From: Phaeosaccion multiseriatum
Taxonomy: Eukaryota; Protista; Ochrophyta, other classes
NCBI GenBank assembly: GCA_965112735.1
Contig: OZ218950.1
Span: forward strand, 2,418,001-2,482,000
Reading direction: 5' to 3'
DNA length: 64,000 nt
Under the pieces are notes generated by a model. It was not told where the DNA came from, did no database searches, and saw nothing but the letters and a program-made list of their open reading frames with translations. Each line of letters opens with the position of its first letter. Position 1 is the stretch's first letter. Both the position numbers and the translations under genes were made by a program. Positions 10,496-51,449 of this stretch are shown here, one piece after another.

Positions 10496-10744
10496 GGGGT
10501 GATTCGAGGACGGCGCCGGCTCACGGCACTGGGAGAAGCAGAAACCCCCCCCCCCGCCTTCTCGCAGGGGTGCTCCTACGGTGACGCCTGCAAAGCCGTC
10601 GGACCCACTGCCCTCGACGCCTGCTAAAATGACAAAGACCAATGCGTTAGAACTTCACACCACGTGTGCACGGTCGAGTACGCGGCTGCAAAGGGGTGAC
10701 GAAGACGCGTGCGACCGCCGCTGCAGGCCCGGTGTCGACGCCAC

Positions 10745-10913
10745 AGGATGTGGCCTGCTCCTTGCTTGCCCTTCCATTTTTTTTTGGCTGCTGCACTGTG
10801 CTCAGAGCCGCTCCAAACGAATCCTCAGAGCTCTTCCCGCGCGTGGCTGAGGGAAGGGATCCACGCCAGCCCCTCGCGACGCTCGCACTTGGCTCCCATG
10901 CTGCTCAGCACAG
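10745..10913 (-). pseudogene. Orphan fragment of the PKS acyltransferase C-terminus
   Basis: ...CCAGCCCCTCGCGACGCTCGCACTTGGCTCCCATGCTGCTCAGCACAG and its flank match ~29525-29674 (AT3) and ~19885-19986 (AT5), with indels. Confidence 0.85.
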
Positions 10914-11324
10914 CACCCCAGGGAGAGAGAGACGAAGGGCTTGTGTACTCACACAGATGAGGGCGTTTACTGACGGTCGAGGCGAGCAGATAGAGTAACG
11001 TAATCTCAAGAGCCTGTGGGTATTAATTTGTCTGTCTCTTGTTAGGGGGAGATACCTGGCGACTTTTGCGTCTTGATGACTGATATGTTGCCTGCAGAGA
11101 CACTCGACGCTCCTCTATGGACTAGTAAAAACACATTACACTGCTTTGCTTCCCTCCCTCTTTTGCTCCGATCGAGTCTCCTTGACTATTTCCATGATAA
11201 GCAAGTCAAGGGCCCTTCCCTGCAAACCTTTTAGAGCTGTACTACAGCTGTATATACAACAGAGCGGCTTGCACTCTGAGCGATACAATAGACTGAAACC
11301 CGTCGGGGCCTCGCTCCAGCAGTC

Positions 11325-13935
11325 TCACGACAGCTTGCTCTTGAGCAATCCTGGCACTCCGCGGCCACCGTACTTGCCTCCATCGCGCAGCCTCTGCCCC
11401 ATGAGCGGCGGGCTGTAGGCGAAGAGCTCGGCCCGACTGCCGACCGTGCCGTGGGTGACAAAGGCGTAGGGGTGAAGGACTGCCCCTGCCTCCACTCTGC
11501 AGGGGGACATGACCAGCAGCCCGGTAGTACTGTCAGCACCAGCAGCTCCTGGGCGAAGCACGTGACCCCAGACTTCACTACCCATGTCAAGTATGGCACC
11601 CGCCTCCAGGGTGAGGAAGTCAAAGTCATGCACATCGGCGGCCAAAATCAATGCCTCGAGCGAGATATCCTTCGGCCGCGAGCACGACATTCGAACGTAC
11701 AGATTGTATAGCCATGTACCGCGAAATAAAGGCGACACAACGTAAAGCAGGAAGAAGTGGCGCAGCCTGGTCAGAAGGCGGAAGTACTGCGTCCGCGTGC
11801 TTCGAGAAATATTCTGTGAGGATATGCACGCTCCCGTGATTGGGTCTGCGCCACGGCTGAAGTCACCGACGAGCAGCCACTTGGAAGCCACCAAGAGAAG
11901 AGTGAGGGCAAGGGCTCCTGCACACCCGCACACGGCCCCGTACAGGGGCAGCATGGCCTCGAAGCTCATGCCCCGCTTCTTCCCCAAGCTTTGGTTTAGG
12001 TGCCTCCCCACCTCCACCACCACCACCAGAGTCCCAATATGGGTCGCCAGCATCAGCAGCGTGGCTCATGTCTCTCTGGCGACAAAGGCGGCCCAACGCT
12101 GGACGTCTCCGTTTGTGAGTGCGCCGGGTCCCGAGAGCGCAGCAGATGGGGCCGCATTCTCCCTCCCTCCACCCTCTACTGCGCCCTGCCCCCACGATGT
12201 CGACACGACTGTGTCCCCAGCTGCTACAGCGGTGAACATTTCAACGCCTTGCTGTGCCGGAATGGCAGCACCAGGCTCCATGACGCACATGTACCCGAGT
12301 AGCGCTTCGTCCCCAACGGTGCAGGTCCCTCGCACACGTGTTGGCCCCACGGCGCTGCCTGCAGTGGCACTACCAACGCTGGTACTGGCTCTTCTCAGCG
12401 GCTCATCGGTAGCGAATGCGGCATACGACGCGAAAGAATCATTTCCTGTGGAAGTATTTGGGGTAGATGGAAAAGGAAAAAAGGAGAGAGAAGGGATGAG
12501 AGACAAGTTACATCTTCGCATCATTACACGGGTCTTCGCTCCAAGCAACGCAGAGCATGGCGGAGAGCCGTGGTGGCAAAGCGCGGTACCAAGCACCCCC
12601 CCCTCCTCCCACATACACTCCGCTAGACCTGTCCTCCCTTCTTACCAAACGTAATGAGGTGGGCCGTCTCAGGATTGTACGCGCCATCACCAGAGTTGAT
12701 AGCCCCCCTTCCCATGCGCACACCCAGGGCCTTGCCCCACCAGTCGAAGAGGCGCCAGCGGGCGAACACGAGCACGTACCCCGACACTTGGCTGTGAAGC
12801 TTGCCAAGGTACCATCGACGAAGCGCCCTTCCAAAGTTGTCGGTGTACACGCCGGGTCGAAGCAGGTAGCTCGGCGCAATGACCCACTTGAGCAGGACCA
12901 GGTACAGGGCAAGCGTCAGGAGGGCCCCATACACTCTAAACACCGTGCTCATGACTCCTGCGTATCGAAAGTCTCTTGACACACCAAGGAAGGTGTACGC
13001 AACGGCGGGCATCCAGCTAAAGAGGGCCGCGAGCATGACAGAAGCCGTAATTAGCACCATACGCACCACGCCTTGCAGGAGTTGGAGGGCTTCCTCCGCC
13101 CATCCGTCACTGCCCTTTGCCAAGTGTCTCTCTCTGTCGGTCATCACAGCTCGTCCACCCCCCTCCTCCTCGGCGCTGGGGCGGCTCTGCTTCCTCTGCG
13201 CCGGGTTGCCCTCCCACACACCATCACCAGCAGGAATGCGCGTCAGGGGGTATACAACGGACAGGCGAGCGACCCGTGTGCCCTCGCCCACCTTCACCCC
13301 ACCGTACACCACAGCCCCCGCCTCCACCTCTGCGCCTGCACCCACAACAATGCTGCGAAAGACCATGCTTGACGGCGTGAAGGAGCGAGGACACAGCGAG
13401 CCATCCACCGAAGCGCCGGCCCCAATCGTGATGAGGTCAAACTCTCGGAGAAAGGTGGAGATGGAGCAGCGCCAGGAGACGTCGGCACCCAGCAGCTTGT
13501 AGAACAAAGTGATGCCCGGTGTTCCGAGGGTAAGAAAGCCACCAACCACTTCCCACACATTGATGCACGCATTCACGTACCACCAGCGGTGATAGTACGA
13601 TGCGTGAAGTGCGACGGTGCCCTCAAAATACGTCCCCACGACAAGCCACTTGACGCACAGGATGGAAGCGGAGTACGTCAGGAACCACAGGACGATGCTG
13701 AAGGAGACCAGAGGGCCCCAACCCACAACTCCACCTGGAGAGGCGTAAGATGACTCCGGATTGGCGAGATGACTCAAGTCCTTCCCTACCCACACCGAAG
13801 TCTCGATGTCAGAGTCCGTCTGGAGCCAGCGGAGGTAGCGGTAAGCTGGAATCATGCAAGCGAAGACCTGCGCCAAGAGTACCGCAATGAGTACCACTTG
13901 CGTCACCTTGAAGCCCACAGAGGACATCATCTTTG
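11325..13935 (-). other. Pls/PosA-like terminal domain: three repeats of TM helices + KWxxxG + left-handed beta-helix (hexapeptide) region
   Basis: Repeat 1 KWLVVG...RWW...GTPGITLFYKLLGADV...DLITIGAG...VGAGAEVEAGAVV. Repeat 2 KWVIAP...RRW...LGVRMGRG...LITFGND...VGDEALLG. Repeat 3 KWLLVG...RGTWLYNLY...DFLTLEAG...VEAGAVLHP. Confidence 0.8.
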
Positions 13936-16900
13936 CGCACAGCAACGGCTCCTGCTCCTCTATCACCCCCTCGTGAGCAGCTGCCCCTTCGCCGTGGCTC
14001 TGCCTTCCCTTTCCCCCACCGGTAACGAGGTCGCAATGCCGCTGCTCCACCACCAGTGTGGCGAGGCCCTCTGCGGTGGGGTTCTCAAGCACCTCCGCCA
14101 GCGGCAGCTCCTCCTGCAGCTCAAACTGGTCCTGGAGCGTGTTGACCAGCTGCACCACGGCCAGAGAGTCCATACCCAACTCCAGGAAGGAGACAGTACT
14201 GCTGATACTCGTATCCGTACCAACAGCTTGGAGCTGGGCCTCGAGGTCCGCCTCCTCCAGAGGAGAGACAGCCCGCCCTTCTCTCATCTGCTGCTGCTGC
14301 TGCCTCTCCATCTGGAAAATACGTGCAATCTCCAGGCAGGCATCCACCGCCTTCTCATGCACGTCTTCTTCGCTCTCGATCACCACTCGACCCCTGTGCG
14401 GAGAGTCCTTCGGCTGATAGCGACCAGAGTACATGAAAACCAACGGCGGCCTTGCAGTTGTCTTCTTCCCTTCAGTTCTGCCTTCACCCGCACTTCCCCC
14501 CGGTATCGCCGCTGCCAATGCTCCCCAATTACTCAAGATAACGTGAGCATTCGTTCCGCCCACGCCATACGAGTGCACCGCGGCGATGAGCGTGCCTGCC
14601 CGAGCTCGCGCTCCACCTCCATCCTCGCTGCTGCTGCTGCCCTTCCAGTCCACAGGAGTCTTGAAAGTAGTGAGCTGCGAGCAGAGGGCTATGCGCGACT
14701 GCTCAATGTAGCCGAGCTCTGGGGACAAGTGCTCTCCATGCAGATTGGGAGGTGTCTGCTGGTGCTGAAGGACCAAAATGGCCTTAATGAGCTGCCCCAG
14801 TCCCGACGCACCCTCCATATGCCCCACACTGGTCTTCACCGCACCCACGCAGAGTGGATATATCCGCTCCCCGGTATCGCGTTGCTCCTCCTCAGCGTAG
14901 ACCCCGTGCAGAGCGCCCATCTCAATGCTGTCGCCCAGCACCGTGCCCGTCCCGTGTGCCTCCACGTATCCCACCTCACACGCTCGACGACTTGCGTCTC
15001 TCAATGCCATACTCATCACCTCTCGCTGTGCCACGCCATTGGGGGCCGTCATCTGAGCGCTTTGCCCGTTGTGGTTGACTGCGCATCCTTCAATGACTGC
15101 CAGGATGTTGTCATGGTCCGCTTCCGCGTCCGAGAGACGCTTCAAAACGAGAGCTCCGCAGCCTTCCGCTCGGACATAACCATCAGCTCCGGCAGCAAAG
15201 GACGCCGTGCGACTGAGATGGATAGGAATCGATGGGGGGAAGACAAAAGGAAGCAATGAGAGAGAGAGTCGTCAAAAGCGGTGCCGCAACCAAGAAATCA
15301 ATCATATGCGCCACAAAGCTTCCGCTTACCCTTTCTTAGAGAGCAGACCAGCCTTCCGGAGGGTAACAAAGCCTTGGGGGTGAAGAAGTAAGTTCACCCC
15401 CCCCACCACGGCTGTCTTGCACTTGCCCAGTCTGAGCTTGTCGCACGCGGCCTCCAGCGCAACAAGCGAGCTCGAGCACGCAGTGTCCAGCGTTAAGCTT
15501 GGCCCCACGAGTCCAAGCCGATTGCTGATGCGTCCGGCCACCAGAGAGGTACTCGTTCCCCCGAGGGTGTACGCATCAGGCTTCTGTGTTCTGTCCGTCT
15601 GTACGGTCGCCCAGTCACTGCCGGATAGACCGATGAAGACGCCCGTGTCTGAACCCTTCATGGCATACTTGTCCTGTCTTTTGCCGTCATACTCCTCCCT
15701 CCCGGCGTCCCCTCGCGAAAAGCCTGCAAAGCCCGCCTCTGCAAGTGCTTCGTACGCTACTTGGAGCATCAACCGCTGATTCGGGTCCATGGTGCTGGCC
15801 TCGCGGGACGAAATGCCAAAGAGTTCATTATCGAAGCTCTCCAATTCATCATCCAAAAAGCCCCCGTGCAGCCCTAAAGTCTCCTCGCCCCACCCCTCGA
15901 AGGGGAGCCGAGTGGCACAGTCCACTCCATCGACAAGATTCCCCCAGAAAGCGGCAGGGTTGTCTGCGCCGCCCGGGAAGCGACAAGCCATGCCCACCAC
16001 CGCCAGCCCACGACGGCGGCGCTGACTCTCTGCCGTGAGCTCTCCTCGCGCTTGGTGGAGAGACTGCTCCTCTTCGAGCTCCGCATAGACTCGCTGCTGC
16101 GGTGCCCCTTCTTTGCTGCCATCATGCCCAGCAACTCCGTGAGACAGTACTTCATCTTCGACCCATTCCGCCAATGCTGCCACCGTTGGATACGAGAAGA
16201 GTACGTCGCTGGTCACATTCACTCCAAAGCGAGACTGCAGCCGGCCGCGCAGCTCCGCCGTTGCCAAAGAGTCAAGGCCTGCCTCCATCAGCGGGGTGGT
16301 GTCGGTCAGCTCTTCGGCACCCTCCCCAATCAGCTCCTTGGCTATATCCATCACCGCAAGGCTCACCATACGTTTCCGGTCTTCGGCGGACAGCTCCAAC
16401 AGCTCCTCGCGCACTTCATTGTTGAGTGCGGTGTTGCTGGACGCGCCTGCTGCTGTTGAGACAAGCCCTGACAGAAGGAACGAGCCGCGGGACGCACCCA
16501 AGCTGTCTGCAAACTTGCTCCAGTCCATGCCAGGCAGAACGGCATAATCGCCCAAATGCGCTGACGACATCGCAGCGGCATCTAAAGCAGCCATGCCCAG
16601 CTCAGCTGACACCGTGCCCACACCAGCCAGCTCCAACTGTTTTTGAACGATATCGAGCTGGGCGGCCATACCAACGTCAGCCCACGGCCCCCACTGCAAT
16701 GACGTCCCTGCGAGCCCGAGGTGTCGCCTGTGCCGCATCAGCCCGTCCACAGCCGCATTCCCTGCAGCGTAGTTGGCCTGTCCAGCGTTACCCAGTACTC
16801 CGGCCATGGATGTGAAGCAAAAGAAGAAGTCAAGGCCAGGAGCGCGCCCATCCTCCTTCGCCCAAGCCAACGAAAGCTCGTGCAAGTTTATCGCCCCCTG

Positions 16901-19900
16901 CACCTTCGGTCGGAAGACGTTCGTCACGCTCTCCACCGTTTGCTCTCCCAGCAGCTTATCATCCAGCACCCCGGCAGCATGCACCACACCGCGAACAGGG
17001 GGTAGCAGAGGCAGCACGCCCCCCAGGCATGTCCGAAGTGCCTCAGCATCAGCAACATCACAAGCAGGAGTATGGGTGGTCAGCTCCACCTTATTCTGAA
17101 GCTGCTGCCACTGTTCTGTCATGCTTTCGGCGACCTTCCCACTCCTCGACAGCAGCACAAGGTGACGAGCGCCCCTCGACGCGAGATGCTGGGCCGTCAC
17201 GAGGCCGAGAGCCCCCAGACCGCCGCTGATGACGTACGTGCCATCCGACACGACTGGCACACCGTACGAGGGGTTGGTCAGCACCACCTTGCCGATGTGC
17301 TTCGCTTGGCTCATGTATAGCATGGCCTTCTGAGTATCCTCCCTCATGTCAAAGGTTATGGTCGGTAACGGCTTCACATTGCCAGACATGCACTCTTTAG
17401 CCAGATGCTGCAGCTCGTCGCTTATCCAGCCCGGCTCACCCGCCGAAAAGTCGAAGTCGATAATGGCGTCCACGGCGACGAGGTTGTACCTCACATCGGA
17501 CCGGGCGGTGTGCATCTGCTCGTGACTCCATACACCTCTCTTCCCAATCTCCACGAATGTACCACCCTCTGTCAGCATGGCAAGCGAGAAGGGAATGTAG
17601 TCTTCACTCAGTGAGTTGAGCACCACGTCCACCTTCATCTCACTCATGGACTGCTTGAACGCCTCCGCGTCTCTCGATGACGCAATGTGCTGCACTCCCA
17701 AGCTCCGGAGGAAATCATGCTTCACAGCAGCACCGGCAGTAGCGTACACGTCTGCGCCCACCCGCTGAGCATACTGCACGGCGGCAAGGCCCACACCACC
17801 CGACGCGGCGTGAATCAACACCTTCTCTCCAGCCCTAAGGTCGTGGAAGGCCTTCGCTACCGTCAAGCACACGGTGGGAAGTGCAGCGGCCTGCTCGAAG
17901 CTCAGCACCGCCGGCATCACGGCCAGACACACATCACTCGTCGTCACATGACTGCGCAAACATCCCGCATCGCCAAAGCCAAACACTGCATCGCCGACAC
18001 GGAAGCGCGAGCTTCCTCCCACACTGATCACCTGCCCGGCGAACTCGGAGCAGGGATCTCCAGGATCGCCAGGGTACATGTCCAGCACATTCAGCACGTC
18101 CCGGAAGTTAAGGCCAACAGCCCTTACTGCCACCTTTACGGAGCTGCCAGCTGGGTCACGGGGTTGATGTTTGCCATGGTCCACATCATCACGAAGGGCG
18201 AAAGCACCGGCAATGCTGCCTCTTGCCTTCAAATCTAGTGAGAAGGGAAGCTGCAGGGGCTGACGTACAAGCTGAGGAGCCCAGCACTGTCCGTCGCGTA
18301 CCCACACATCTTCTGTGGCAGTAGGGAAGGCCAAGCCTAAGGCAAGCTCGCTGTCTTGGGCCTTCTTGCCGCTGAGGTCCACCACGCCGATCTGCAGGGA
18401 GGGGTGCTCCACTCTCGCAGTCCGCACCAGCCCGGTCACCCAGCTGTCACGCCAGTCCTCGCCGCTTTGGACGCCTCTAGTCAAAACCGTCAGCGGCACC
18501 CTTGATGCAGTGGACAGGCTCCTGAGTAGAGCCATCAGGGCGTAGGCCGCTCGTGCTTGCGTGCTTCCTTCTGCGTCTTCTTCGCCAGCTCCGGGTACCA
18601 GCACGTACAATACGCGAGCCCACTCGTCCTGTCCAAGAAAAAGAGTACCATCATCCCAGGAGGCGTCCTTCCGCCCATATCGAGTGTGTACGTAAACGTT
18701 CTCCGGAACACAGCGCAGCACTGCAGCAATGATTGAAATCTCTTCCTCCCTTTCGTCCTGTGGAATAACCACGAGCCACTGACGCGCCGCCGCCTCAGCA
18801 GGGTCAGTATCACTACCAGGGGCCTCCTCTTGTGTAGACGACTCAGCGGTCTGCCATTCAAGCGTGTACATCGCCCGATGAAGAGGATTGGGGCGCGCAA
18901 AGCCTCTCGCCCGCTGCACGCGGAAGCCCCGCATCTCCACGAGCACCTCTTTGCTGTCGAAGTCTGCAATGCGGATGTCAAACTTGACGCTGTCCACCAC
19001 TGACTGGCCCTCACTCAGCTTCGTGTGCACCCACACGTTCTTTCCCGCCATGGAGGCGGAAACAACCACTTCGTCAAAGCCTGCAGGTAGGAATGGAGAT
19101 TCCCCCCCCTCCTTGAGCAGCTTCCTTGGCAGCGCTTGCATGATGGTATGAGTAGCATTGTCCAGCACCGCGGGGTGCAGAGCAAAGCCCTTCATCTCCC
19201 ACGGCTCGCACAGCTCCTCATCCAGGGCACACACGATCGACAGAACCTCTCCGTCCCCTCCGTACATGTGGCGGGTCCGCTGAAAGCGGGGGCCGTACTG
19301 GAAGCCGGCGTCTGCGAAAGACTTGTAGAGCTCACTCGATACGTCCTGCTCGCCAACTCTAGCTCGAATGGATTCCACGTGCAAATAAGCTCGCGCCGTG
19401 CTACGCTCCATGACAGACACGTACTTCATTCTTGCCGTGGTGCCCTTGTCGCCCGTGGCACCTCCGAAGAACTGCATGCTTCCATCTGCCGCGTGAAGGG
19501 CACTCATCCCGGCACAGACCATTGTATGGCGGCTTTGAGCTTGGTCCATGCCCGCCTGTTGGAAACCCTCAATCTCCAGTGGGACCACAAGGCTGGCTCC
19601 GTGCAGGACTACCTGCTGCTCCACTCCGAGCTGTCTTCCTCCTAGAGCAGCCACGACGCCCACTTCAATGTACGTCACCCCCGGAATGATCACCATATTG
19701 TTGACGGCATGGTCCTTGAGAAGGTCCTTGAGATGAGGGGAGAAGGGGCTGGGGAGGCGCATTCCGTCTCTCTCCTGGACCATCTCACCACTGGGCATAA
19801 AAGCAAGCGGAGGCTTGTACCAAGGAAATGATCGGCGAGTCGGATAAAGCTCAAGATGCTCCGGCCCCGCTACTCTGCCCAGGGCTGCTCCAAACGAATC

Positions 19901-22900
19901 CTCGGAGTTCTGCCCTCGCGAGAGGGAGGAGATCCACGCCAGCCCCTCGCGACGCTCGCACTTGGCTCCCATGCTGCTCAGCACAGGGTTGGGGCCCACC
20001 TCAACGATGCTCAGGTCAGCCCCCCTCCCGTCTCCCATCCAGTGCTCCACCAGCGTGTGGATGCCTTCTGCGAACAGCACTGGCGACAGCATGTGCTGCA
20101 CCCAATACGTCACCTGCGTCACCTCCTCCCCTCTCACCACCTCACCTGTCACGTTGGACACCAGGGGAATGCGTGGGGCGCTGAACGACACCTGCCTCAG
20201 AACCTCCTCCAGCGCACGTACAGCGGGCTGCATCAGAGGAGAGTGGAAGGCGTGCGACACCTCCAGGGCCTTGCAGCCCACCCCATCTGCCGTGAGCCTC
20301 TCCACCACCTTGTCCATAGCACTGCGCGCTCCAGAGATCACGCTCGCGCTCGGTCCATTCGACGACGCCAGCACCACCTCGCTTGCCAGCCCCGCAGCTT
20401 CGATGCTTGCCAAAGTCGCCCCCTTGCCTGCCCTCACTGCGAACATCACTCCATCGCCCTCGGGGCAGGCCTGCATGGCGGCTCCTCTCTTGGCGGACAG
20501 CATCAGCCCGTCCTCCAGCGACATGACGCCGGCTACGCACGCCGCCACTACCTCGCCCAGGCTGTGGCCCATCACCATGAAGGGCTCCACGCCCTCCGAC
20601 TTCCACCGCTCACACAGGGCGTACTCCAGCACAAACAGGCACGGCTGGCAGTAGCGTGTCTCCTTCAGCAGCGCTTGTGCAGTCTCCTCTCCCTCAGCTG
20701 TAGGGTACATGAGCTCCACCGCAGACTTGTCCAGCCAGGCCCGCTCCATGAGCAGCCTACTGCACCGCTGCACGCACTCGCGGAACACGCCCTCCTTCTC
20801 GTACAGCTCTCTGCCCATGCCCACGTACTGCGAACCCTGTCCGGTGAACAAAAACGTCACCGGTGAACTCTTCTTGCCTTGCTGTCCATCCAGCTGCAGC
20901 AAGGCTTCGCTCTCGCTCTCCTCTACCATCGTCTGTCTGAAACTGCTGAGCACCGCATGGACGTTGGCTCCTCCCGCGCCGAAGGAGCTGACAGCAGCAG
21001 TGCGCCTCTCTCCGTCCCTGGCACTCAGTGGCACCATCGTAGACGGCAAATTCACCGGAAAGCCATCCAAACGAAGCTCCGGATTGAGCTTCCTCATGTG
21101 GAGATTGGGGGGAGCAGATCCGTGCTGAAGGACCAGCAGAGCTTTGATGAGGCCAGCGATTCCGGACGCACCCTCTAGATGCCCGATGTTGGTCTTCACC
21201 GCCCCAACCACCAGGGGCCGAGCTTCCTCGCGGCCATGGCCATACACGGCCCTCAAAGCACTCATCTCGATGGGGTCGCCGAGAGAAGTACCGGTGCCGT
21301 GCGCCTCCACGTAATCAACCTCATGACCGTTCAAGCCGGCCTCCACCAGTGCCTGCTCCATCAGACGCTGCTGAGCAGATGGGCTCGGGGCAGTGTAGCG
21401 CAAACTTCTCCCGTTGTGGTTCGCAGCGCAGCCATTGACGACAGCGAGGATGTGGTCGCCATCGGCCTGTGCATCGTCCAGTCGCTTCAGCACCACGGCG
21501 CCGCAACCCTCACCTCGAACATAACCGTTGGCCGCAGCGTCGAACGTCTTGCAGCGCCTGACCATGAGGATTTGAGGGTTTGCAAAAGTGAAGAACAGAG
21601 AAGAGGAAACCCATCAGCAACAGGGGCCTTTCAGACAGCTTGCGCCTTTTGATCTTGCTCTCATACCGGCCCCAAGAACAAGCTCCCACCCACACAAAAG
21701 AGACACGCACTTACCAGTCAAGACTCAGGAAACCTCCTTCGGCGAGGGTCTCGAACGTCTGTGTACCCAGCAGCAAGTTGACGCCTCCCACCAAGGCGAT
21801 GTCACACTTGCCCAGTCGCAAGCTGCTGCAGGCCCCCTCCAGTGCCACCAAAGACGACGAGCACGCCGTGTCGACACTCATGCTCGGCCCTCCGAGGCCC
21901 AGCACGTAAGACATCCGATTTGCCGGACTCGCATTGGACATGCCCATGACGGAGTACGCACCCTTGTTCGCATCGTCAACCACTGAGCCCCACTCGCTGC
22001 CGGACATACCCACGAACACACCGGTGTTGCTGCCATGTAGTGTATCCTTGCGGTATCCCGCCCTGTGCAGCGCCTCGTACCCCACCTCCAGCATGACGCG
22101 CTGATGAGGGTCCATGGCACCCGCTTCGGCCGCAGAGATGCCGAAGAAGGTGTTGTCAAAAGCCTCCACTCCATCAATAAAGCCCCCTTGCCACTGCTTC
22201 TGACCCTCATCGGCCCAGCGACCAACAGGGCTGGCTCCAATACAGTCTGTCCCTGCACAGAGCATAGCCCAGAAGTCCTCGGGGTTCTTAACCCCTCCAG
22301 GGAAGCGACAGGCGATCCCCACGACGGCCAACGGCGCCCTTGAGTCAGTGCGGTGCGCTTCAGCCTCGATCGCCGCAGAGCGACTGCTAGAGGGTTCCTC
22401 TACCTCGCCAAGCACCTCCGCTTCGATCCACACTGCCAGCGCCGCTACCGTGGGATAAGCGAAGAGCACGTCAGTGGTCACAACAGCCCCGAAGCGAGCC
22501 TGTAGCCGGCCGCGCAGCTCCACTGTTGACAAAGAGTCAAGACCTGCTTCCATCAAAGGCGTGTTCGCGTCCAGCTCTTCGGCACCCTCTCCAAGTAGAT
22601 CCTTGGCGATATCAAGCACCGCCAATCGCACTGATTGCTGTCGCTCGCCAGGGGGCAGTCTCAAGAGCACCTCGCGCACTTCATTGTTTAGTGCGGTGTT
22701 GCTGGACGCGCCTGCTGCTGTTGAGACAAGCCCTGACAGCAGGAACGAGCCGCGGGACGCACCCAAGCTGTCTGCAAACTTGCTCCAGTCCATGCCAGGC
22801 AGAACGGCATAATCGCCCAAATGCGCTGACGACATCGCAGTGGCATCTAAGGCAGCCATGCCCAGCTCAGCTGACACCGTGCCCACACCAGCCAGCTCCA

Positions 22901-31900: not shown

Positions 31901-34900
31901 CCTCCTTGCTCGCCCAGCGGTCGAGCGGAGCAGGCTGGACACAGTCCTTGCCATTGCTAAGCATGGCCCAAAACTCCTCTGGGCTGTTCGAACCACCTGG
32001 CAAGCGGCACGCCATGCCCACAATAGCCAGGGGGGCAGTCATGCTACCTCCAGCCGGTTCAGCATTCCTCTCCTCATATTCACCCTCCTCAGCCCCCAAG
32101 ACCAAGCCCTCGAGCCACACAGTCAGCGCTGCCACTGAGGGGTGACTGAAGAGCACATCGTTGGGGACCGGCACGCCGAAGCGAGCTTGGAGTCGACTCC
32201 GAAGCTCCACCGTAGACATGGAGTCCAGCCCAGCCTCCATCAAAGGTCTCAAAGCGTCGAGCTCGATGCCTGCTTCACCAATGCATGCTTTTACCATCTC
32301 CATGATTAAAGCCTGCAGCATGGGCTTTCGCTCTCCCTCCGACAGCTTCAGTAGGTCCCGCTTAACCTCGGTCGTCACACTGTTGCTAGCCTTGTTCTGC
32401 GGTCCCACCATCGAAGCCTCTCTAACGAGAGCATCGAGCATCCCGGGGTTGCCAGCAGCCTCAGAGAAGGCGGGCCAGTCCATGCCAGGCAGAACCAAGA
32501 GCTCGCGCGATGCCGCAGATGGAGCTGACACGCCGGCATCAAGCGCCGCCATACCCAATGCCTTACTGATGAGCCCAACGCCGGCCATCTCCAGACTGGC
32601 CATGGCAACTTCGGACCGAGCGGCCATGCCAGCTTCGCCCCACGGCCCCCATTGGAGGGCCACAGAGCTGGAGTGACCGAGGCGCCGACGATGCTGCATC
32701 AGCCCGTCCACAGCAGCGTTGGCTGCAGCATAGTTGGCCTGGCCTGCATTGCCTAACACACCTGCCATGGATGTGTAGGACACAAAGAAGTCCAAGGGCC
32801 AGGCCATCTGCAGCGACAGCTCGTGCAGATTCCAAGCGCCCTCCACCTTCGGCTTGAAGACCTCTTCGATACTCTCGGGCGTCTGGTCCACCAGCAAGCG
32901 ATCGTCGAGCACGCCAGCAGCGTGGATGACACCTCGTACGGGCGGCATGCTACTGAGCGCCGTGCCTAGAGCCTTCTCAAGCGACTGCGCGCTAGACACG
33001 TCGCACGATACAGCCTTGGTGCTCACCCCGCCGGCCACGGTGAGAAGCTCCTCCCACAGCGCCTGGGAGTCCGCCTTGACTTTTCCCCCTCGCGAGAGCA
33101 GTACAAGATGGCGAGCTCCTTTATCAGCCAAATGCTTCGCAGTCGCCAGCCCCAGCGCCCCCAGCCCACCGCTGATAACGTAAGTCCCGTCTCGCACGAC
33201 GGGAATGCCACACTCAGGGCTACTGAGCACAACCTTCCCAATGTGCTTCGCAGTTCTGAGGAAGTTCATTGCCTCCGCAAGCTCATCCCTCAAGTCGAAT
33301 GTCTTCACTGGTAGCGCCTCGGCCCTGCCCGCCTCGCTGTCCGCTGTCAGCTGCTCCAGCCCAGCGAACGCCCAGCCCTGCTTCTCGGCCTTGAAGTCGT
33401 CTGCTATCATGGAGTCCAGTGCAATCAGCTCGTACAGCACGTCGGGCCTGGCAGCCTTCATCGCCTCCCTGGTCCACACGCCTCGCTTGCCGATCTCCAT
33501 GAAGCGCCCGTTCTTCGTCAGCAGCTCCAGAGAGTAAGGGATGAAGTTGTCCGACAGGCAATTGAGCACCACATCCACCTTCGCAGCTCCCATGGAAGCA
33601 TTGAAGGCCTCCGGATCTCGCGACGACGCAATGTGCTTCACGCCCATGCCTCGCAAGTAGGCGTGCTTCTCCTCGGATCCAGCAGTGGCGTAGATCTCCG
33701 CTCCGATGCGCTGAGCAATCTGCACGGCCACCAGACCCACTCCACCTGACGCGGCATGGATGAGCACCTTCTCACCACGCTTCAAGCCAGCGAGTTGCTC
33801 AAAGGCGTGCACCACTGTGAGCCACGCGATAGGCAGCGCTGCCATGTCCTCGAAGGTCCTGTTGGAAGGCATGTGGGCCAGACACACGTCACTTGTCGTT
33901 ACGTGGGAGCAGAAGCAGCCCTTGTCCGGAAACCCGTAGACCTTGTCTCCCACTTGAAAGCGCGAGTTTCGCGATGCTCGAGTGACCACCCCCGATAGCT
34001 CGATGCCAGGCTGTCCAGGGTCGCCAGGGTACAGGTCGAGCACATTCAGCACGTCTCTGAAGTTGAGCCCCACCGCCTTGACACAAATTTCAATCTCCCC
34101 GTCCTGCAAGGCAGCGTCTCTCTCGGAAGGGAGTACGTCCCTGCGCTTCAAGCCGCCTTCGATGCTTCCCCTCACCATGAGATCGAAGGAGAATGGGAGG
34201 TGCGTGTCTGTTGAGGGCGTCAGGTGAGGCGTGAGATATCGTCCGTCTCGCACCCACACGTCCTGCCCCAGTGACGCGATGGCCCAGCACTTGGGAAGGT
34301 CCACGCTGCCCACGTCCACCACCGTGATGGCCAGTGAAGGGTGCTCAGCACGAGCGGTTCGAACCATGCCGTACACCCAGTGATGCCTCCACCCCTCGCC
34401 GCCGCTCAGCATGTCCTGCACCAGCACCATCAAAGGAGCTGGCCTTCGTAAAAGCTGCTGTAGCAACAAGAGGAGTGTGTGTGCCTCTTGGCTGGGGCTC
34501 TGCTGCTTGCCGCCGAACAAGGTGCACACCACACAGCCCCATCCTGCTGGCGCTTCTGAAGCGAGGGTGGAGTCGTCGATGCTCTTGACCTCCCTCTCCG
34601 TCAGTGTCACAGAGATGGGCAAGCTCTCTTTCGCTGCCTTGTCCAAGCTGCCACGAGCGCCGCTGGTGAGGAGCAGCCAAGCTTCCTCTCGCTCTTCCAC
34701 GTCACCTCTGCTGCGGGAGATGGAATCGTTGGGCAGCCACTCTAGAGAATACAGCGCTCGGCTGACGGGGTTGGTGCGGGAGAAGCCTCGGGCCAGCTGC
34801 ATCCGGAAGCGGTTAAGCCGCACGAGCACTTGCTTCGTTTCGAAGTGTGCTATCACGATGTCGTACTCGATCGCAAGAGCTTGAGAGTCCACCTCCTTCA

Positions 34901-37900
34901 CCACCGCATGAACCCACACCTTCTCGCTCGTGATGGCCCCTCGCACAAGCACCTCTTCGCAGCCGGTGGGTAAGAAGACGGCGGCAAAGGCCTTGCTCGT
35001 CAGCTCCTCAGGCAAGAGCGCCAACATCGTGTGCGCGGCATTATCCAACACGGCAGGGTGGAGGTAGAAGCCGTTGATCTCCCACTCCGCCGATAGGCTG
35101 CCATCCATTGCCGCCGCAACCGACAAGGCCTGTCCACTGGCTGCGAAAAGGTGCTGCGTTCGGACAAAGCTGGCACCGTAGTCATAACCAGCACTGGCAA
35201 GCTTGAGGTAGAGCCCCTCGGCGATGTCCTCGTCCCCCACCGCGGCTCTCACCCGCGCCACGTCCAATGTCTCTGCCTCCGTCCTTGTGCACAATTGAAG
35301 GGAAGTCGCCTTCGCCACCGTCTCTCCAGCCTTGCCGTGGGGACCTCCGATAAACTGCACGCTGCCGCGGGCAGTGACGAGGGCACTGACTTCAGAAGCG
35401 ACCACAGTGGTGGAGCCCTCCACCGCACGGTCCACATCGGGGGCACGAGCGCCTGCAATTTCCAGTGGAGACATGAAGACCAGGCCCTTCAGGACCACTT
35501 GCCTCTCGCCAGGGAAAGGCTTGCCCTTCAGCAAGGCGGCAAGGCCAATCTCGATGTACCCCATGCCCGGCATGAGCACCACTCCTCCCACCGCGTGATC
35601 TTGCAGCAAGCCCTTGAGCTGAGGGGTGAAGCAGCATGAGAGGAGTGTTCCTCCCTTCTTCTCGACGACGCCGCCGCTTGGTACCATCGCATGCGCCTGC
35701 TGCTCGAACCAAGGGAGGGCACGACGGGTGGGGAACAAAGGAGTGGGCTTCCCCAGCACTGCCGCCACTGCTCTGCCGAACGAGGCAGTGTCGCTCCCCT
35801 CCCGCCGCATGGAGGGCTGCCACATCACGTCCGATCTCTCTCCCTCGCATTGCTGCGCCATGTTGATCAGCACAGAGCTGGGCCCAATCTCTACCACTCG
35901 TACACCTTCAGGCCTCTCCCGGAGTAGCGTGGTGATACTCTCCGCGAACAGCACCGGCGATAGCATGTGTTGCACCCAGTACGCTACCTGCGTCACCTCC
36001 TCCGCCTTGACCACCTCACCCGTCACGTTGGACACCAGGGGAATGCGTGGGGCGCTGAGTGACACCTCACTTAGAGCCTCCTCCAGAGAACGCACAGCGG
36101 GCTGCATTAGAGGAGAGTGGAAGGCGTGCGACACCTCCAGGGCCTTGCAGCCCACCCCATCTGCCGTGAGCTTCTCCACCACCTTGTCCACAGCGCTGCT
36201 CGCTCCAGAGATCACGCTCGCGCTCGGTCCATTCGACGACGCCAGCACCACCTCCCCTGCCCCCCCCGCAGCGTCGATGCTTGCCAAAGTCGCCTCCTTG
36301 CCTGCCCTCACTGCGAACATCACTCCCTCGCCCTCGGGGCAGGCCTGCATGGCGGCTCCTCTCGTGGCGGACAGCATCAGTCCGTCCTCCAGCGACATGA
36401 CGCCGGCCACGCACGCCGCCACTACCTCGCCCAGGCTGTGGCCCATCACCATGGACGGCTCCACGCCCTCCGACTTCCACAGCTCACAGAGGGCGTACTC
36501 CAGCACAAACAGGCATGGCTGGCAGTAGCGTGTCTCCTTCAGCAGCGCTTGTACACTTTCCCTTTCCTCGGCAGCAGGATATATGAGCTCCACCACAGAC
36601 TTGTCTAGCCAGGCCTGGTCCTGCAGGAGGCCATCGCACCGACGAACAGCTTCACGAAAGACCTCACGCTGTTGAGGCAGCGAACGAGAGACACGCAAAG
36701 CAGAGACAAGAGAGAAAAGCATATGAGAGTAGGTGGCCGAGGTGATGCGAAGCGACGGAGAAGACAAGAGGAGCACTGACAGATACAGAGGTTCAAATGA
36801 GCAAGCGAACTCACCTTATCGTAGAGCTCCTTGCCCATGCCGGGGTACTGGGAGCCTTGCCCCGTGAAGAGAAAGGCGACGGGAGATGCGGCCACCTCCG
36901 TCTTCCTCCTCGTCGGTGTCTTCGAACCCTCCCCCTCCACACTCGGCGCAGGGTTGCTCAGCACCACATGGGCGTTGGTGCCTCCTGCTCCGAACGAGCT
37001 TACTCCTGCGTACAAGGGCTCGCTGCTGCCATTGGGGTGTCCCTCGCCACTCAAGGGGGTTAGTCTGGACGACGGGAAGGCCACCGCAAATCCATCAATG
37101 CCCAGCTGAGGATTGAGCGTGCCGAGGTGCAGATTGGCCGGAACAGCTCTGTGCTGAAGAGCGATGACGGTCTTGATGACTCCCGCGATGCCTGCGGCGC
37201 CCTCCAAGTGACCAATGTTAGTCTTGACCGCTCCCACCAGGAGTGGGAAAGAGCTCTCCCGCCCTTCTCCGTAGGCGGCTTTGAGAGCGCTCATCTCGAT
37301 GGGGTCGCCAAGAGCCGTGCCGGTGCCGTGCGCCTCCACGAAGTGAACTTCCCTGCCCGCTACACCCGCCTCCTCCAAGGCTGCCTGCATCAGCGTCTGC
37401 TGCGCGTCTGGACTGGGTGCTGTGAGCCGCATAGAGCGCCCATTGTGGTTCACGGAGCTTCCCTGCACGACGGCGAGGATGTTGTCTCCGCTGCGCTCCG
37501 CGTCGTCAAGCCGCTTCAGCACAACGGCGCCGCAACCCTCTCCTCGGACGTAGCCGTTGGCCGATGCGTCGAACGTCTTGCAACGCCTGAGAAAGGCATG
37601 GGAATGGCGGGGTTGGAAGCGGGGGAGAGGGATTGAGCTTCATGGTCTGCCCATCAACACACTACAACTCTACTACTTCTGCACGAACTCGATGCTCTCC
37701 AAGGCAAGCTCCCCCATTCGGCCGTACGTACCAGTCCTTGGACAAAAAACCTCCCTTGTCGAGCTGTTCGAAGGAACGGGAGCCGAGCAGCAGGTTCACT
37801 CCTCCCACAACCGCAGCATCGCACGTGCCGAAGCGAAGATAGCGACAAGCCGTGTCCAAGGCAACGAGGGAGGAAGAGCAAAGCGTATCAACCGATATGC

Positions 37901-40900
37901 TTGGGCCTCGCAGGCCCAGTGCGTAGGACAGGCGATTTGCAGGGCAGCCCGCTGACTCGCCCATCATGGAGTAAGCCTTAACGGCCACGTCTTTGTTCAG
38001 CGCGGCCCAGTCGCCGTGCTGCATGGAGCCCACGAACACTCCAGTGTTGCTGTTGCGCAGCGTGTCCATGGAGAAGCCTGCCTCGTGCAGCGCCTCGTAG
38101 CCGACCTCGAGCATGATGCGCTGAGTGGGGTCCATGACCTCGGCCTCGACCACGGAGATGCCAAACGTGGCGTTGTCAAACATCTCCACGCCGTCGATGA
38201 AGCCTCCGTGCCACTCCTTCGCCGCACCAGGGAGTCTTCCCGGGGGCATGGCGGTGATACATTCCCTTCCCTCCAGCAGCATGGACCAGAAAGCGTCGGG
38301 ACTGTCTGCGCCTCCAGGGAAGCGGCACGCCATGCTCACTATTGCAAGCGGGGCAGAAGCGTCGCCCCCCCCTTGAGGCGATGGCATCATCCTGGGCAGG
38401 CGCAGGCTGCTCGCACTTCCCTCCATGAGCGCTGAGCCCAACCACCCCGCCAAGGCCGCCACGGTGGGGTGGGCGAAGAGGGCGGCACTGCTAACGGGAA
38501 TGTCCGTGAGCAGGTGCAGACGCTGCCTCAGCTCCATGAGCGCCAACGAATCCATGCCAGCCTCCATGAGAGGCTTGTCCATGTCGATGCCGACAGAGCC
38601 TGCCGTGCTAGAGAGGGCGATGTCGGAGATGACGGATCGAAGCCTCTCTTGGCGTTCAGCTGGACTGACACCGCGGAGCTCTGCTGCCAAGGAGTTTCCG
38701 GCCGCCGATGTCGGTGGGGCGGGCAGCAGCTTGAAGGCCTTTCTGCTCGTGAAAGGGGAGGCTCTGACGTTGGTCTTCTCCGCTTGTGATATAGCCGTCC
38801 CCTCCAGGATGACGTGGGCGTTGACACCGCCAAACCCAAAGGAGTTTACAGCTGCAAAAGAAGCAGAAGTAGCCACAGCGAGCAGAAGGGCATGGTGAGA
38901 ACGGGTTCAACAATTTACCATCATACGATAGCTCATACTCTCTAAAGTCCTCTTTGACTTGTCTCGAGAAGAAGCGAGTGAGTGAGTAAGAGTGGGTGAG
39001 TGAGTTATTGGGTGGGTGAGTGAGTGAGTGAGTGAGTGAGTAAGTAAGTGAGTGAGTGAGTGAGTGAGTGAGTGGGTGAGTGAGTGATTGGGTGGGTGAG
39101 TGAGTGAGTGAGTGAGTGAGTGAGTGAGTGAGTGAGTGAATGAGTAAGTGAGGGAGGGAAGGAGGGAGGGAGTGCGGGAGTGAGTGAGTGAGTGAGTGAG
39201 TGAGTGAGTGAGTGAGTGAGTGAGTGAGTGAGTGAGTGAGTGAGTGAGTGAGTGAGTGAGTGAGTGAGTGAGTGGGTGAGTGAGTGATTGAGTGAGTGCG
39301 CGAGTGAGTGAGTTGCCGAGTGAGTGAGTGAGTGATCACAGGAAACGATTTTGAGTAAGGGCCCTCAACGCACCTCCGATTCGGGTGGAGATGGGGGTCA
39401 TGCGTCCGGGGATGGGCAGCAGAGCGCTGTTGCCCTCCGTTTTCAGTGCAGGGTTCAGCGTGGACAAGTTGAGGTTGGGAGGCGCTTGGACATGCCTGAG
39501 CACCAGCACCGTCTTGATGAGCCCCGCAATGCCTGCCGCAGCCTCCGCGTGACCAAGGTTGGTCTTGATCGCTCCAACGACGAGACGGCGGGCTGTCGCC
39601 AGGTCGTGGTCTCCGTAGGTGCCAGCGATGGAAGCCCACTCCGTGCGGTCCCCGAGGGGCGTGCCCGTGCCGTGCGCCTCGATGAAGCTCACGTCCGACA
39701 GAGCGATGCCCGCCTCTGCTACGGAGTCCAAGACCGCGGCCTTCTGTGCCGCTTCGTTGGGGGCAGTGAGGGTCGTGCCGAGGCCCGTGTGATTGATGCA
39801 GGAGCCTCGAATCACCGCCAATATGTTGTCTTGGGCCTCTATGGCGTCTTCGAGGCGCTTTAGCACGACGGCGCCACAGCCCTCTGCTCGCAGCCACAGG
39901 GCACACGCAGCAAATGGAGGTGACTGGAGGGTGAGCTAGGGGATGGTCGAGCCGCGCTCATCAGGCTCATAAAAAAAGGACAATCTCAGACCCAAAGAAA
40001 CACTCCCTGCTCATCCTGCACTTATCTCCCGTATTTCCCCCCCTTCCTCTCCCTTTCCCTTTCTCCCTGTCTCTGCCCCTGCTCCTCTCCATCTCTCCCT
40101 GTCTCGCCTTCTCCCTCTCTCTCTCCCGCTACTACCTCTCTCGCTCTCCCGATCTTTCTCTCCATCTCCCCTTCTCTCCCTCCCTCTCTCATTCCCTCTC
40201 CCTCTCCCTCTCCCGCTCCTGCTCCCTCTTCCCCTGGCGCCTCTCTCCCTCTCCCTGCCTCCGCCTTTCCGTCTCCCTCTCCCTCTCCCTCTCACCGCCC
40301 TCCTTGCGGAGCTGGAAAGGGCCGTGAATCAGAGCGCTGCGGCAAGCAAGCTCTACCACATGTCAATCTCATTCTCGTCCTTCTAGTCTTCTATACAGTC
40401 TCGCAGGCGCCGCTCGTGCTCACCTGCCCGCACGTAGCCGTTGGCAGCGGCATCAAAGACCATGCACTTGTCTGACAGCAAGTGCAGCGATGACATGGCG
40501 GAGAAGGGCTCGGGATTGGTCATGATGGACACTCCTCCGGCCAGGGCCATGTCGCAGTCGCGGCTTTGGAGGCCTCGGCAGGCCTGGTGCACGGCCACGA
40601 GAGAGGAGGAAGAGGCCGTGTTGATGGTCTGCGAAGGTCCAGTCAGACCGAGGGCGTAGGAGACCCGATTGGCCACGAGAGCCTCTGAAGCGCCCGTAGC
40701 AACGTACGGTCCAGGAGCGTGGGACTGCATTTTGGACATCCAGTCTCCGTTGCCGCACCCGATGAACACTCCTGGACGTTCGAGAAGAGGACTTTGTGGT
40801 GAGGTATGTGGTGAGGTCAGTGACCATCAGAGCGAGCATCAGAGCATTTCTCTCCCGCTCCCTCTTCGTCTGATTCTGCATGCTATTTGCTTCAGGCATC

Positions 40901-41881
40901 ACAACTGAAAGGGGTACATCGACCCACCTGTTTTGCTCTCAAGAAGAGCTTCCTTGTCAAGCCCTGCGTCGCGAAAGGTCTCGTAGGCCACCTCCAACAT
41001 GACTGCGGGTGTTCAGGAAACAGCAAAGCAGGTGAGACCTTGTTGGTTTTACTGAAGGCGAAACAACTCCGAGTCACACAGGGAGAGGATTGTGATGCTT
41101 GCTTTGCTTACCTCGCTGCTGAGGGTCCATTGCGGATGCCTCCGGGTCAGAGATGTTGAAGAAGACGTTATCGAACAGCTCTACGTCGGGGAGGAAGCCT
41201 CCCCGCGTGGGGTAACCGCTTTCTCCACGCTTGAGCTTGTCCAAGGCCGCAGGCTCCCATCTGTGAGAGAGACGCGCGCGAACGCGCGAGGAGTGTTTTG
41301 GGAGGCGCCAGCCAGAAGGAGACAAAGATAAGGGTTAGAGCCATGAGCTCTTGACCGTGTGTACAGTGATTCTTCGCCCTCATACCGTCCGTCCACTACC
41401 ATCCCAACTCCCTCCCACCCAACCACTCCAGCAAGATGTGCTGCGGTGGCAGGAGGGGGCGGGGGCAAAATGCTAAGCGCCGTGATGCACGCTGCCCATC
41501 ATCTCCAAGGTTCCGTCGCCCAGACCCAGCCAACCACCGCCCACTCACGCACCTATCTGTGGGCATGTCTGTGATGCCGCTGCCCTCCCTGCAGAGCAGG
41601 TCCCACAGCTCAGGAACAGAGTTGGCACCTCCAGGGAAGCGGCAGGCCATTCCAACAATGGCAATGTCGCCACGACGATGGCCGCCTTTCTCGCTTCTCG
41701 TTGGTCCGCTGCCCATGTTTGGGTGCGTGGGGGAGGGAGGCGCCCTTCGAACCTCGTCCTCTTTGCCTGCTGGCACTGGTGCTGCTGGTGCTGCGGGTGT
41801 CTCCGCCGCCGGTGCCTCCCCCGCACCTGTTGCTGCACCCTGAGGCTGATCCTGCACCGGCTCCTTGCCGGGCCCGGGCAT
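11325..41881 (-). CDS. Giant six-module type I PKS with a Pls/PosA-like transmembrane terminal domain (copy A); ~9,285 aa if read through, 9,038 aa to the internal TGA at 12068-12066
   Basis: Exons 41881-41553, 41260-41112, 41002-40928, 40771-40424, 39883-39374, 38851-37732, 37586-36815, 36668-31405, 31243-26975, 26820-21715, 21557-15330, 15212-12646, 12445-11325; all GT-AG, phases sum to 27,858 nt. Contains 6 KS, 3 AT (GHSLG/HAFH), 3 DH, 3 ER, 4 KR, 6 ACP (GxDS). Start codon is inferred: the upstream acceptor region differs by 7 nt between copies, so it is probably UTR. Confidence 0.93.
14045..16010 (-). other. PKS module 6: KS-(AT remnant)-ACP
   Basis: DTACSSS, HGTGT, KTSVGH; PLVFMYSG resembles the AT-start motif FLFTGQG; ACP FLELGMDSLAVVQL. 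Confidence 0.85.
16150..22340 (-). other. PKS module 5: KS-AT-DH-ER-KR-ACP
   Basis: DTACSSS; GHSLG, HAFH; HAVNNMVIIP; HAASGGVG; LDD, YAAGN; GLDSL. Confidence 0.9.
22410..27605 (-). other. PKS module 4: KS-DH-ER-KR-ACP (AT-less)
   Basis: QTACSSS; the KS end (NAHAVLS) is joined by ~30 aa to the linker LYPTRQAFRW, then DH HAVNNVVIIP / HPAVLDNATH; ER; KR with LDD; GLDSL. Confidence 0.9.
27670..32040 (-). other. PKS module 3: KS-AT-KR-ACP (no DH or ER)
   Basis: DTACSSS; GHSLGQ, HAFH; the post-AT linker LFPTRKAFPWY runs straight into the pseudo-KR LYVVEW; KR GGLGGLG, LND, YAAAN; GLDSM. Confidence 0.9.
32100..38355 (-). other. PKS module 2: KS-AT-DH-ER-KR-ACP
   Basis: DTLCSSS; GQGSQ, GHSLG, HAFH; HAVGGVVLMP, HPAVLDNAAH; HAASGGVG; GGLGALG, LDD, YAAAN; GLDSM. 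Confidence 0.9.
38430..41670 (-). other. PKS module 1 (loading): KS(Cys->Ser)-ACP, no AT
   Basis: GPSQTINTASSSSLVAV; HGTGT and KTNLGH retained; ACP MEAGMDSLALMELRQRL. Coordinates approximate. Confidence 0.85.
38975..39335. repeat. (GAGT)n microsatellite in intron 5 of PKS copy A
   Basis: Tandem GAGT array; the intron is 522 nt here versus 377 nt in copy B. Confidence 0.9.
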
Positions 41882-42558
41882 TCTCTCTCCTCCTTGTTGG
41901 CCAGCCAGATCCAACGCTGGAGAGAGAGTGAGCAAGTATGGGAGTAAAACGATGGTGAGAGAGAGACCGCGGACAACTATGATGCTGTGCGTGGTCTCCC
42001 TCCTGTGGTCTCCCCCCTTGCTTGGAGGAAAGGGATCGAAAGGGAGTCATGAGGAGGCGAGGGGCGGGGGCGGGGGGGGAGCAGAAACATAGGGTTATGG
42101 GCCGGCCGCCGCCCCGTGCTTCCCTTCCTAACTAGCTTGGTGAAGACACTCCTTGGGATGGCCTGAGTGAACATCACGTGTTGCATGTGCAATTTTTCCG
42201 GGTGCCAGCACAAGGAACAAAAAGGGGAAAAGGGGTCAGCTCGTACCCACCTTTCTTCTTCTCCTCCTCTCCCTGCTGTTCTGCTGTTATCCTCCTGCCT
42301 TCCTCTCCTCTGCCGCAGCCTCTCCTCTGCCGCAGCTGTGCCACATTCCGCGGCAATGTTGTCTTCTTAAAAACTTATTTTCTTTCACTTTATGTCTCTA
42401 TTTCTTAAACCCCCCCCCCCCCCCCCCCGAGGAGATCAAGGTCAGAAGTAACGGAAGGATCGCCCGGATCCAGATCGGATCCGAGCTCCGAATCTGGGCC
42501 ATCGAACTTTCCACCAAATTTTCTGAGCGCTCCAAGCCCCCCCCTCGACCCCCCCCCA

Positions 42559-42915: not shown

Positions 42916-51449
<8,534 letters not shown>

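Follow-up and report, generated by a model that had tools for sequence, protein, structure and literature searches.

The release of finished chains from polyketide synthases (PKSs) usually proceeds via thioesterases, reductases, condensation-like domains or discrete transferases. The membrane tails of Pls and PosA are required for the formation of an amide bond between a carrier-bound amino acid and the amine of a free acceptor, and a pseudo-trimer packing has been described for the PosA model (PMC10522769). A 2026 preprint still labels this tail as a terminal domain of unknown function. Here we describe a stretch of 64,000 nucleotides from the ochrophyte Phaeosaccion multiseriatum (assembly GCA_965112735.1, contig OZ218950.1, positions 2,418,001 to 2,482,000; below called the window and numbered from its first letter), in which one minus-strand gene carries both a modular type I PKS and a tail of the Pls/PosA type. 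In this combination a carrier-dependent membrane acyltransferase of the Pls/PosA type would serve as the release domain of a modular PKS, and the copy in this assembly is interrupted. In the literature we found no description of a PKS or a fatty-acid-AMP ligase (FAAL) joined to a Pls-type tail and no characterised example, in agreement with the original prediction, made from the letters of the window, which knew of no biochemically characterised case.

Fusion of the polyketide synthase with a Pls-type tail

The gene runs on the minus strand from an ATG at 41881 to a stop codon at 11325-11327 and consists of 13 exons and 12 GT-AG introns of 109-540 nt. This part of the minus strand (41881-11325) is a series of very long open frames (of up to 2,095 codons) with short gaps between them, and Pfam type I PKS domains were found in all of them. 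Splice joins were chosen as the frame-preserving GT-AG pairs that restore the ketosynthase (KS) and acyltransferase (AT) sequence, and all 12 introns have a GT(A/G) donor and a pyrimidine-rich CAG acceptor. The resulting exons are 41881-41553, 41260-41112, 41002-40928 and 40771-40424 (exons 1-4), 39883-39374, 38851-37732, 37586-36815 and 36668-31405 (exons 5-8), 31243-26975, 26820-21715 and 21557-15330 (exons 9-11), and 15212-12646 and 12445-12069 (exons 12-13). The coding sequence joined in this way amounts to 27,114 nt, i.e. 9,038 codons without a stop, and ends at an in-frame TGA (12066-12068), which is followed by a further open frame (12065-11328) and the stop at 11325-11327.

The connection of the PKS to the tail does not depend on the splice model. 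Exon 15212-12646 holds the C-terminal half of the last ketosynthase (KS5), the last acyl carrier protein (ACP5), transmembrane segments (TM) 1-4, repeat 1 and the start of repeat 2; as KS5, ACP5 and the start of the tail share one open exon, no splice is needed for the fusion. A PKS line stands where Pls has its adenylation (A) domain, as the original prediction had proposed.

Directly after ACP5, the hydropathy of the tail reveals six hydrophobic segments in three pairs, alternating with three soluble beta-helix repeats. Repeat 1 (13181-13930), delimited by hydropathy, TIGR02353 and Hexapep matches and an AlphaFold (AF2) model, comprises TM1 (13930-13832), TM2 (13714-13634) and the beta-helix C1 (13633-13181). 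Repeat 2 (12141-13090) comprises TM3 (13090-12995), TM4 (12955-12857) and C2 (12856-12141), the last of which is split by an intron (12645-12446). Repeat 3 (11361-12065), placed by hhalign to the family profile, comprises TM5 (to 12003), TM6 (11957-11856) and C3 (11855-11361). It is present in the DNA, outside the uninterrupted reading frame of this assembly. The original prediction of an ACP followed by three TM plus beta-helix repeats therefore stands as far as the DNA is concerned, with all six segments and three repeats found, but it had missed the TGA at 12066-12068, which splits off repeat 3.

Judged by its sequence, the tail is genuinely homologous to the terminal domain of Pls and PosA. 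TIGR02353, the profile to which the terminal region had been likened, matches the last big exon with 57.2 bits (E 9.8e-16, profile positions 58-370), which does not reach the curated NCBIfam cut-off of 423.1; the repeat-3 piece scores 16 bits, and the closest eukaryotic relatives of the tail also obtain just 105-165 bits. When 1.84 billion representatives were searched exhaustively with phmmer, the tail had 948 matches at E <=0.001, the best with 8e-61 and 33% identity. With X at the position of the TGA, the tail can be aligned over its whole length, all three repeats included, with residues 1164-2049 of the Ectocarpus protein CBJ30872 (P0152; E 1.7e-85), which is annotated as a 'long-chain acyl-CoA synthetase'. 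Identity to this protein is 36% in repeat 1, 39% in repeat 2 and 33% in repeat 3, and the repeat-3 piece matches the third repeat of a 71-sequence family profile with 99.1% probability (hhalign, E 4.8e-19).

The fold leads to the same family of enzymes. The AF2 model of the window residues from TM1 to the start of repeat 2 has a predicted local distance difference test score (pLDDT) of 87.8 and a predicted template modelling score (pTM) of 0.87. Its repeat 1 superimposes on maltose O-acetyltransferase with Z 12.5 over 145 residues and a root-mean-square deviation of 3.2 (VIA-align; 3srt_A and 3ect_A), and on the LpxD-ACP complex with Z 8.7. The topology and structure predictions that had been proposed as a check on the tail thus yielded six segments in three pairs and a hexapeptide acyltransferase fold. 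The top rows of the Foldseek search were all left-handed beta-helix (LbH) transferases, and Pfam gives a Hexapep match in the tail. A model of the full Ectocarpus tail (pLDDT 84, pTM 0.88) shows six long helices and three strand-rich repeats. No solved structure of a Pls-type tail was retrieved from our PDB copy by sequence or fold search.

Of the 150 best representatives, 55 have the tail joined to a FAAL-type adenylation domain and 40 to one of the amino-acid type, while 55 are fragments or have neither; two carry KS domains. In the five closest relatives the partner is a FAAL of the FadD32/FadD21 type, with about 300 bits (NCBIfam), far above the scores for amino-acid adenylation. A maximum likelihood tree of 72 full-length tails (quick search, with several long branches and with support given as the approximate likelihood ratio test SH-aLRT and not as bootstrap) pairs the window tail with the Ectocarpus protein as its sister (SH-aLRT 99), within a clade of 20 rows (SH-aLRT 96) that contains 11 FAAL types, two PKS types and no amino-acid types, whereas all 33 amino-acid types, including the proteins named as Pls/PosA family, are found on the opposite side of the tree. 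The named members of the FAAL clade are all eukaryotes (Ectocarpus, Amorphochlora, Bigelowiella, Picozoa, Salpingoeca, Creolimax and Chromera). The clade is represented in brown algae, chlorarachniophytes, choanoflagellates, ichthyosporeans, chromerids and Picozoa, and a liverwort has a more distant relative; a single characterised member would name a widespread eukaryotic family of lipid-conjugating enzymes.

Among the relatives, about 70 in number and divergent, the histidine of repeat 3, the KW, RWW, LGA and FDL motifs and the glycine columns are conserved. The surroundings of this histidine differ between the two sides of the tree: QTHLFEDR(V/I)M is almost invariant in the amino-acid clade, whereas in the FAAL/PKS clade QTHLFEDR is reduced to GH, the window reading WGHVLRPG. 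The acidic pair of QTHLFEDR may help to bind cationic diamino acids, and GH as opposed to QTHLFEDR may serve as a sequence marker of the acceptor class across the whole tail family.

Modules, loading region and neighbourhood

Pfam and motif searches revealed six KS, three AT, three dehydratase (DH), three enoylreductase (ER), four ketoreductase (KR) and six ACP domains, so that the six modules claimed in the original prediction are confirmed by six KS and six ACP domains. The order is KS0(Ser)-ACP, KS-AT-DH-ER-KR-ACP, KS-AT-KR-ACP, KS-DH-ER-KR-ACP, KS-AT-DH-ER-KR-ACP and KS-ACP, followed by the tail.

Module 0 (38439-41881) begins with a low-complexity stretch and contains KS0 and ACP0 but no AT. 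Module 1 (32121-38351, KS-AT-DH-ER-KR-ACP) and module 4 (16160-22334, of the same composition) were recognised by Pfam, the former also by its motifs. Module 2 (27688-32033) is KS-AT-KR-ACP, its KR having the tyrosine and Rossmann motifs; judging from this domain set, a beta-hydroxyl would remain in its product. Module 3 (22434-27600) is KS-DH-ER-KR-ACP without an AT, the spacing between KS and DH being only about 110 residues. Module 5 (14036-16006) has an intact KS5 (Cys/His/His) and ACP5 (DSL serine), and neither an AT nor reducing domains. Between KS5 and ACP5, at about 14400-14500, there is a short stretch resembling the start of an AT (PPLVFMYSG), which suggests that the AT of module 5 was deleted rather than originally absent. 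An AT is thus missing from modules 0, 3 and 5.

The catalytic residues are otherwise well preserved. The Cys/His/His triad is complete in KS1 to KS5, the three ATs have GHSxG and HAFH and are of the malonyl type, and the tyrosine and Rossmann motifs are found in all four KRs. The ERs have GGVG, the DHs the histidine and proline of HxxxGxxxxP, and all six ACPs the DSL serine. The gene shows the features of a modular type I PKS in its Cys/His/His ketosynthases (with Ser for Cys in KS0), its ATs of the malonyl type, its ACPs with the DSL serine and the optional DH, ER and KR, the AT being absent from modules 0, 3 and 5. It lacks a canonical release domain, i.e. a thioesterase (TE) or thioester reductase. 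None of the large exons has a Pfam match to a TE, thioester reductase, condensation, adenylation or methyltransferase domain, nor did Pfam recognise an additional C-terminal domain downstream of the stop at 11325 (9.4-11.3 kb), and tblastn found no FAAL, A or other AMP-binding domain anywhere in the window. The absence of TE, reductase, condensation (C) and A domains noted in the original prediction thus agrees with both searches.

In KS0 the active-site Cys is replaced by Ser (TASSSS, in exon 40771-40424), both histidines are kept, and an ACP follows without an AT; this is an unusual loading module. The same TASSSS and the same ACP without an AT occur in a second PKS gene (KS0 at 2380-1982), which starts at 3471 on the minus strand and runs off the start of the window. 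The first approximately 665 residues of the second gene, which cover the Ser-type KS0, the ACP and the beginning of the following KS, match those of the gene starting at 41881 with 80-100% identity in the individual exons, and with 90-99% in most pieces. At the DNA level, 1-3863 corresponds to 38266-42319 (minus strand) as a duplication of at least 4 kb with 94-95% identity, including introns and the 5' flank. The loading region common to both genes arose recently, by tandem duplication or by gene conversion.

In each of KS1 to KS5 an intron interrupts the sequence at the identical place, just before RCKTFDA (RTASFAA in KS5). These introns lie at 37731-37587, 31404-31244, 26974-26821, 21714-21558 and 15329-15213, and the codon across the join encodes Trp in three modules and Gly in two. 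The common site is in keeping with a gene that grew through duplication of its modules.

Between the two PKS genes, at 7267-9374, there is a 2.1-kb (CCCT)n microsatellite of about 526 copies (97% matches), which causes the extreme GC and AT skew of this region and long artefactual open reading frames on both strands. Immediately upstream of the 41881 gene, an isoleucyl-tRNA synthetase gene (zf-FPG_IleRS and tRNA-synt_1 matches) occupies 42919-46795 on the minus strand, and the other neighbours are a Na/Ca exchanger-like and a PSME4-like gene. No phosphopantetheinyl transferase, trans-AT or hydrolase was found among the genes in the window. The PKS pair is set among housekeeping genes and not in a biosynthetic cluster.

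The in-frame TGA and the release of the chain

The TGA lies after codon 9,038, at the start of TM5. It matters because the near-invariant histidine of the family sits in repeat 3. Beyond the TGA the frame stays open for 246 codons (TM5, TM6 and repeat 3) and ends within a few residues of the ends of the homologues, which align over the TGA site without a gap. The histidine, found in 68 of 71 relatives, is retained in the window (11564-11562).

As a possible explanation of the TGA, a hidden intron was considered, and all in-frame GT-AG pairs of 45-600 nt over this site were enumerated. A strong donor combined with a CAG acceptor, as in all 12 real introns, is found in none of them, and every candidate pair would remove the conserved TM5-6. 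Selenocysteine was considered as well, and no SECIS element (selenocysteine insertion sequence) or other Rfam match was found in 9400-12300. A word-indexed search for a near-orthologue of repeat 3, against which the TGA could be compared, gave no match, and the best library match to the tail is just 33% identical.

The GC content by codon position is 0.62/0.48/0.72 in the segment after the TGA and 0.64/0.47/0.70 in the preceding exon, and it is about 0.5 throughout in the 3' flank. This coding-like composition, and an identity to Ectocarpus close to that of repeats 1 and 2, indicate that the constraint on repeat 3 persists or was lost only very recently. The TGA is explained either by a nonsense mutation of very recent date or by an error at a single base, and the copy is recently inactivated, miscalled at one base or broken in this strain only.

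The following proposal is based on the gene model, the domain order, the fusion of ACP and tail within one exon, and the homology, fold and clade membership of the tail shown above, and it refers to the intact form of the enzyme, with repeat 3. We suggest that this modular type I PKS of a stramenopile alga probably releases its product by means of a membrane-embedded, three-fold left-handed beta-helix acyltransferase, which transfers the chain to a separate membrane acceptor. The three hairpin TM pairs would place all three beta-helix repeats on the face of the membrane occupied by ACP5 (cytosolic). The chain bound to ACP5 as a thioester would be largely saturated and would bear a 3-oxo group and a single hydroxyl in mid-chain; given acetate priming and collinear synthesis, it would be a 3-oxo-9-hydroxy-C12 chain, a prediction made uncertain by the Ser-type KS0 and the three modules without an AT. 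In LpxA and LpxD, an acyl thioester from ACP is attacked by a hydroxyl or amine which is activated by a histidine at the subunit interface. The repeat-3 histidine might act as the general base in the same manner as in such hexapeptide acyltransferases, so that a nucleophile held by the tail (the amine or hydroxyl of a separate acceptor) would attack the ACP5 thioester. The product would then be set free in or at the membrane, as an acyl conjugate destined for the membrane, the wall or secretion. If this is true, a Pls-type membrane acyltransferase built in as a release domain would constitute a further release mechanism of PKSs, one that ties product formation to the membrane.

Several observations weigh against this proposal. 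The TGA cuts repeat 3 out of frame in this assembly, and repeat 3 itself has a Cys (11684-11682) where 71 of 71 relatives have Gly, as well as an insert of three residues at the LGA motif; the replacement and the insert could mean that the copy is decaying. The FAAL/PKS clade is biochemically uncharacterised, and both the acceptor and the catalytic role of the repeat-3 histidine are putative. Priming would have to be accomplished by a Ser-type KS0 without an AT, and the absence of an AT from half of the six modules casts doubt on collinearity and on the predicted product.

The interruption can also be taken at face value: with a genuine TGA the protein would stop at the end of repeat 2 and, as TM5-6 and the histidine-bearing repeat 3 are missing, no release by transfer would take place, the function being carried by intact paralogues. 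That no intron or SECIS element rescues the TGA and that an invariant Gly of repeat 3 is replaced is consistent with such a dead or dying paralogue, as is the 27 kb before the TGA, which has no other defect and so does not suggest an assembly generally prone to errors here. However, the 246 open codons after the TGA, ending where the homologues end, speak against it, and their coding-type GC content and a similarity to Ectocarpus equal to that of repeats 1 and 2 mean that the inactivation would have to be very recent or the base call wrong. We regard this explanation as rather unlikely. It is considered still less probable that the tail is only a membrane anchor or export conduit, with beta-helix repeats of a purely structural role and a chain that leaves ACP5 by means of water or an unlinked enzyme; this is the explanation we rate lowest. 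In this clade catalysis by the tail is putative, and the product might pass through a channel of the six TM helices, as has been proposed for the secretion of polylysine. On the other hand, the conservation of the His, KW, RWW, LGA and FDL motifs and of the glycine columns over about 70 divergent relatives points to an active site, as does the hexapeptide acyltransferase fold, and the tail of Pls is required for bond formation (PMC10522769).

The lead idea of the original prediction was polymerisation via the hydroxyl of the chain itself. In this case the tail would act iteratively as a polyester or oligo-ester polymerase, the mid-chain hydroxyl of a free monomer or oligomer attacking the next ACP-bound chain, with an estolide- or algaenan-like product at the membrane. 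The tail is indeed homologous to a proven iterative polymerase domain (PMC10522769), no TE competes for the chain, and exactly one module (the KR-only module 2) lacks DH and ER, so that one hydroxyl should survive. Nevertheless, the tail falls outside the polymerase clade, into that of the FAAL and PKS types, and is devoid of QTHLFEDR. In its nearest relatives the substrate comes from fatty-acyl-AMP ligases, and a monomer supplied by these need not bear a nucleophile; the first free hydroxy-acid acceptor would require a hydrolase, none of which is seen here. The idea therefore loses its leading place, and we consider such a polymerase improbable. It is very doubtful that the intact enzyme is, more specifically, a single-polypeptide membrane polyester synthase which joins hydroxy-oxo fatty acyl monomers head to hydroxyl and extrudes an estolide- or algaenan-like polymer; if it were, this would be the lipid analogue of polylysine synthesis, and algae would have a new way of making wall polyesters. 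The second possibility of the original prediction, in which the acceptor of the chain belongs to the wall or the membrane, turns out to be the better reading: as the nearest relatives obtain plain fatty acids from FAALs, a separate acceptor is likelier than the hydroxyl of the chain.

Comparison with known systems

Like Pls and PosA, the protein has a carrier followed by six TM segments in three pairs, which alternate with three beta-helix repeats (of about 180 residues), and no TE; the near-invariant histidine of repeat 3 and the KW, RWW, LGA and FDL motifs are kept. However, a PKS with six KS domains lies upstream of the tail in place of an amino-acid A domain that supplies a diamino acid, and the expected product would be a lipid-type acyl conjugate instead of a cationic polyamide. 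The window gene also differs in that its frame is broken by a TGA before repeat 3 and that QTHLFEDR is reduced to GH.

With hexapeptide acyltransferases, i.e. maltose and galactoside O-acetyltransferases, sugar N-acetyltransferases, LpxA and LpxD, the tail shares the left-handed beta-helix fold of its soluble repeats. These enzymes are soluble homotrimers with three active sites, whereas the tail consists of three unequal repeats in one membrane-tied chain, apparently with one conserved histidine.

The architecture of a PKS joined to this tail is not unique to the window gene. A transcript of Stygiella incarcerata (P0125, 4,380 aa) encodes KS-AT...KS-DH-ER-KR-ACP-tail, and a eukaryotic metagenome contig, which also carries TPX2 and RGS genes, encodes FAAL-ACP-KS-ACP-tail (P0008). 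A survey for giant PKS-tail proteins with the Stygiella tail returned only this tail itself and a Marchantia protein, the index used being too insensitive for the tail family. The Stygiella and the metagenome protein have, as the window gene does, a KS-containing line that ends in ACP and tail, but unlike the window gene both begin with a FAAL. The tree requires a separate origin for each of the three sampled PKS-tail fusions.

The eukaryotic FAAL-ACP-tail proteins, themselves uncharacterised, share with the window gene the clade of the tail, in which the sister protein from Ectocarpus is 29-33% identical to it across the three repeats, as well as a lipid-type acyl-ACP donor and GH without FEDR. 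They load a ready-made fatty acid via the FAAL, whereas the window gene builds its chain by a multimodular PKS.

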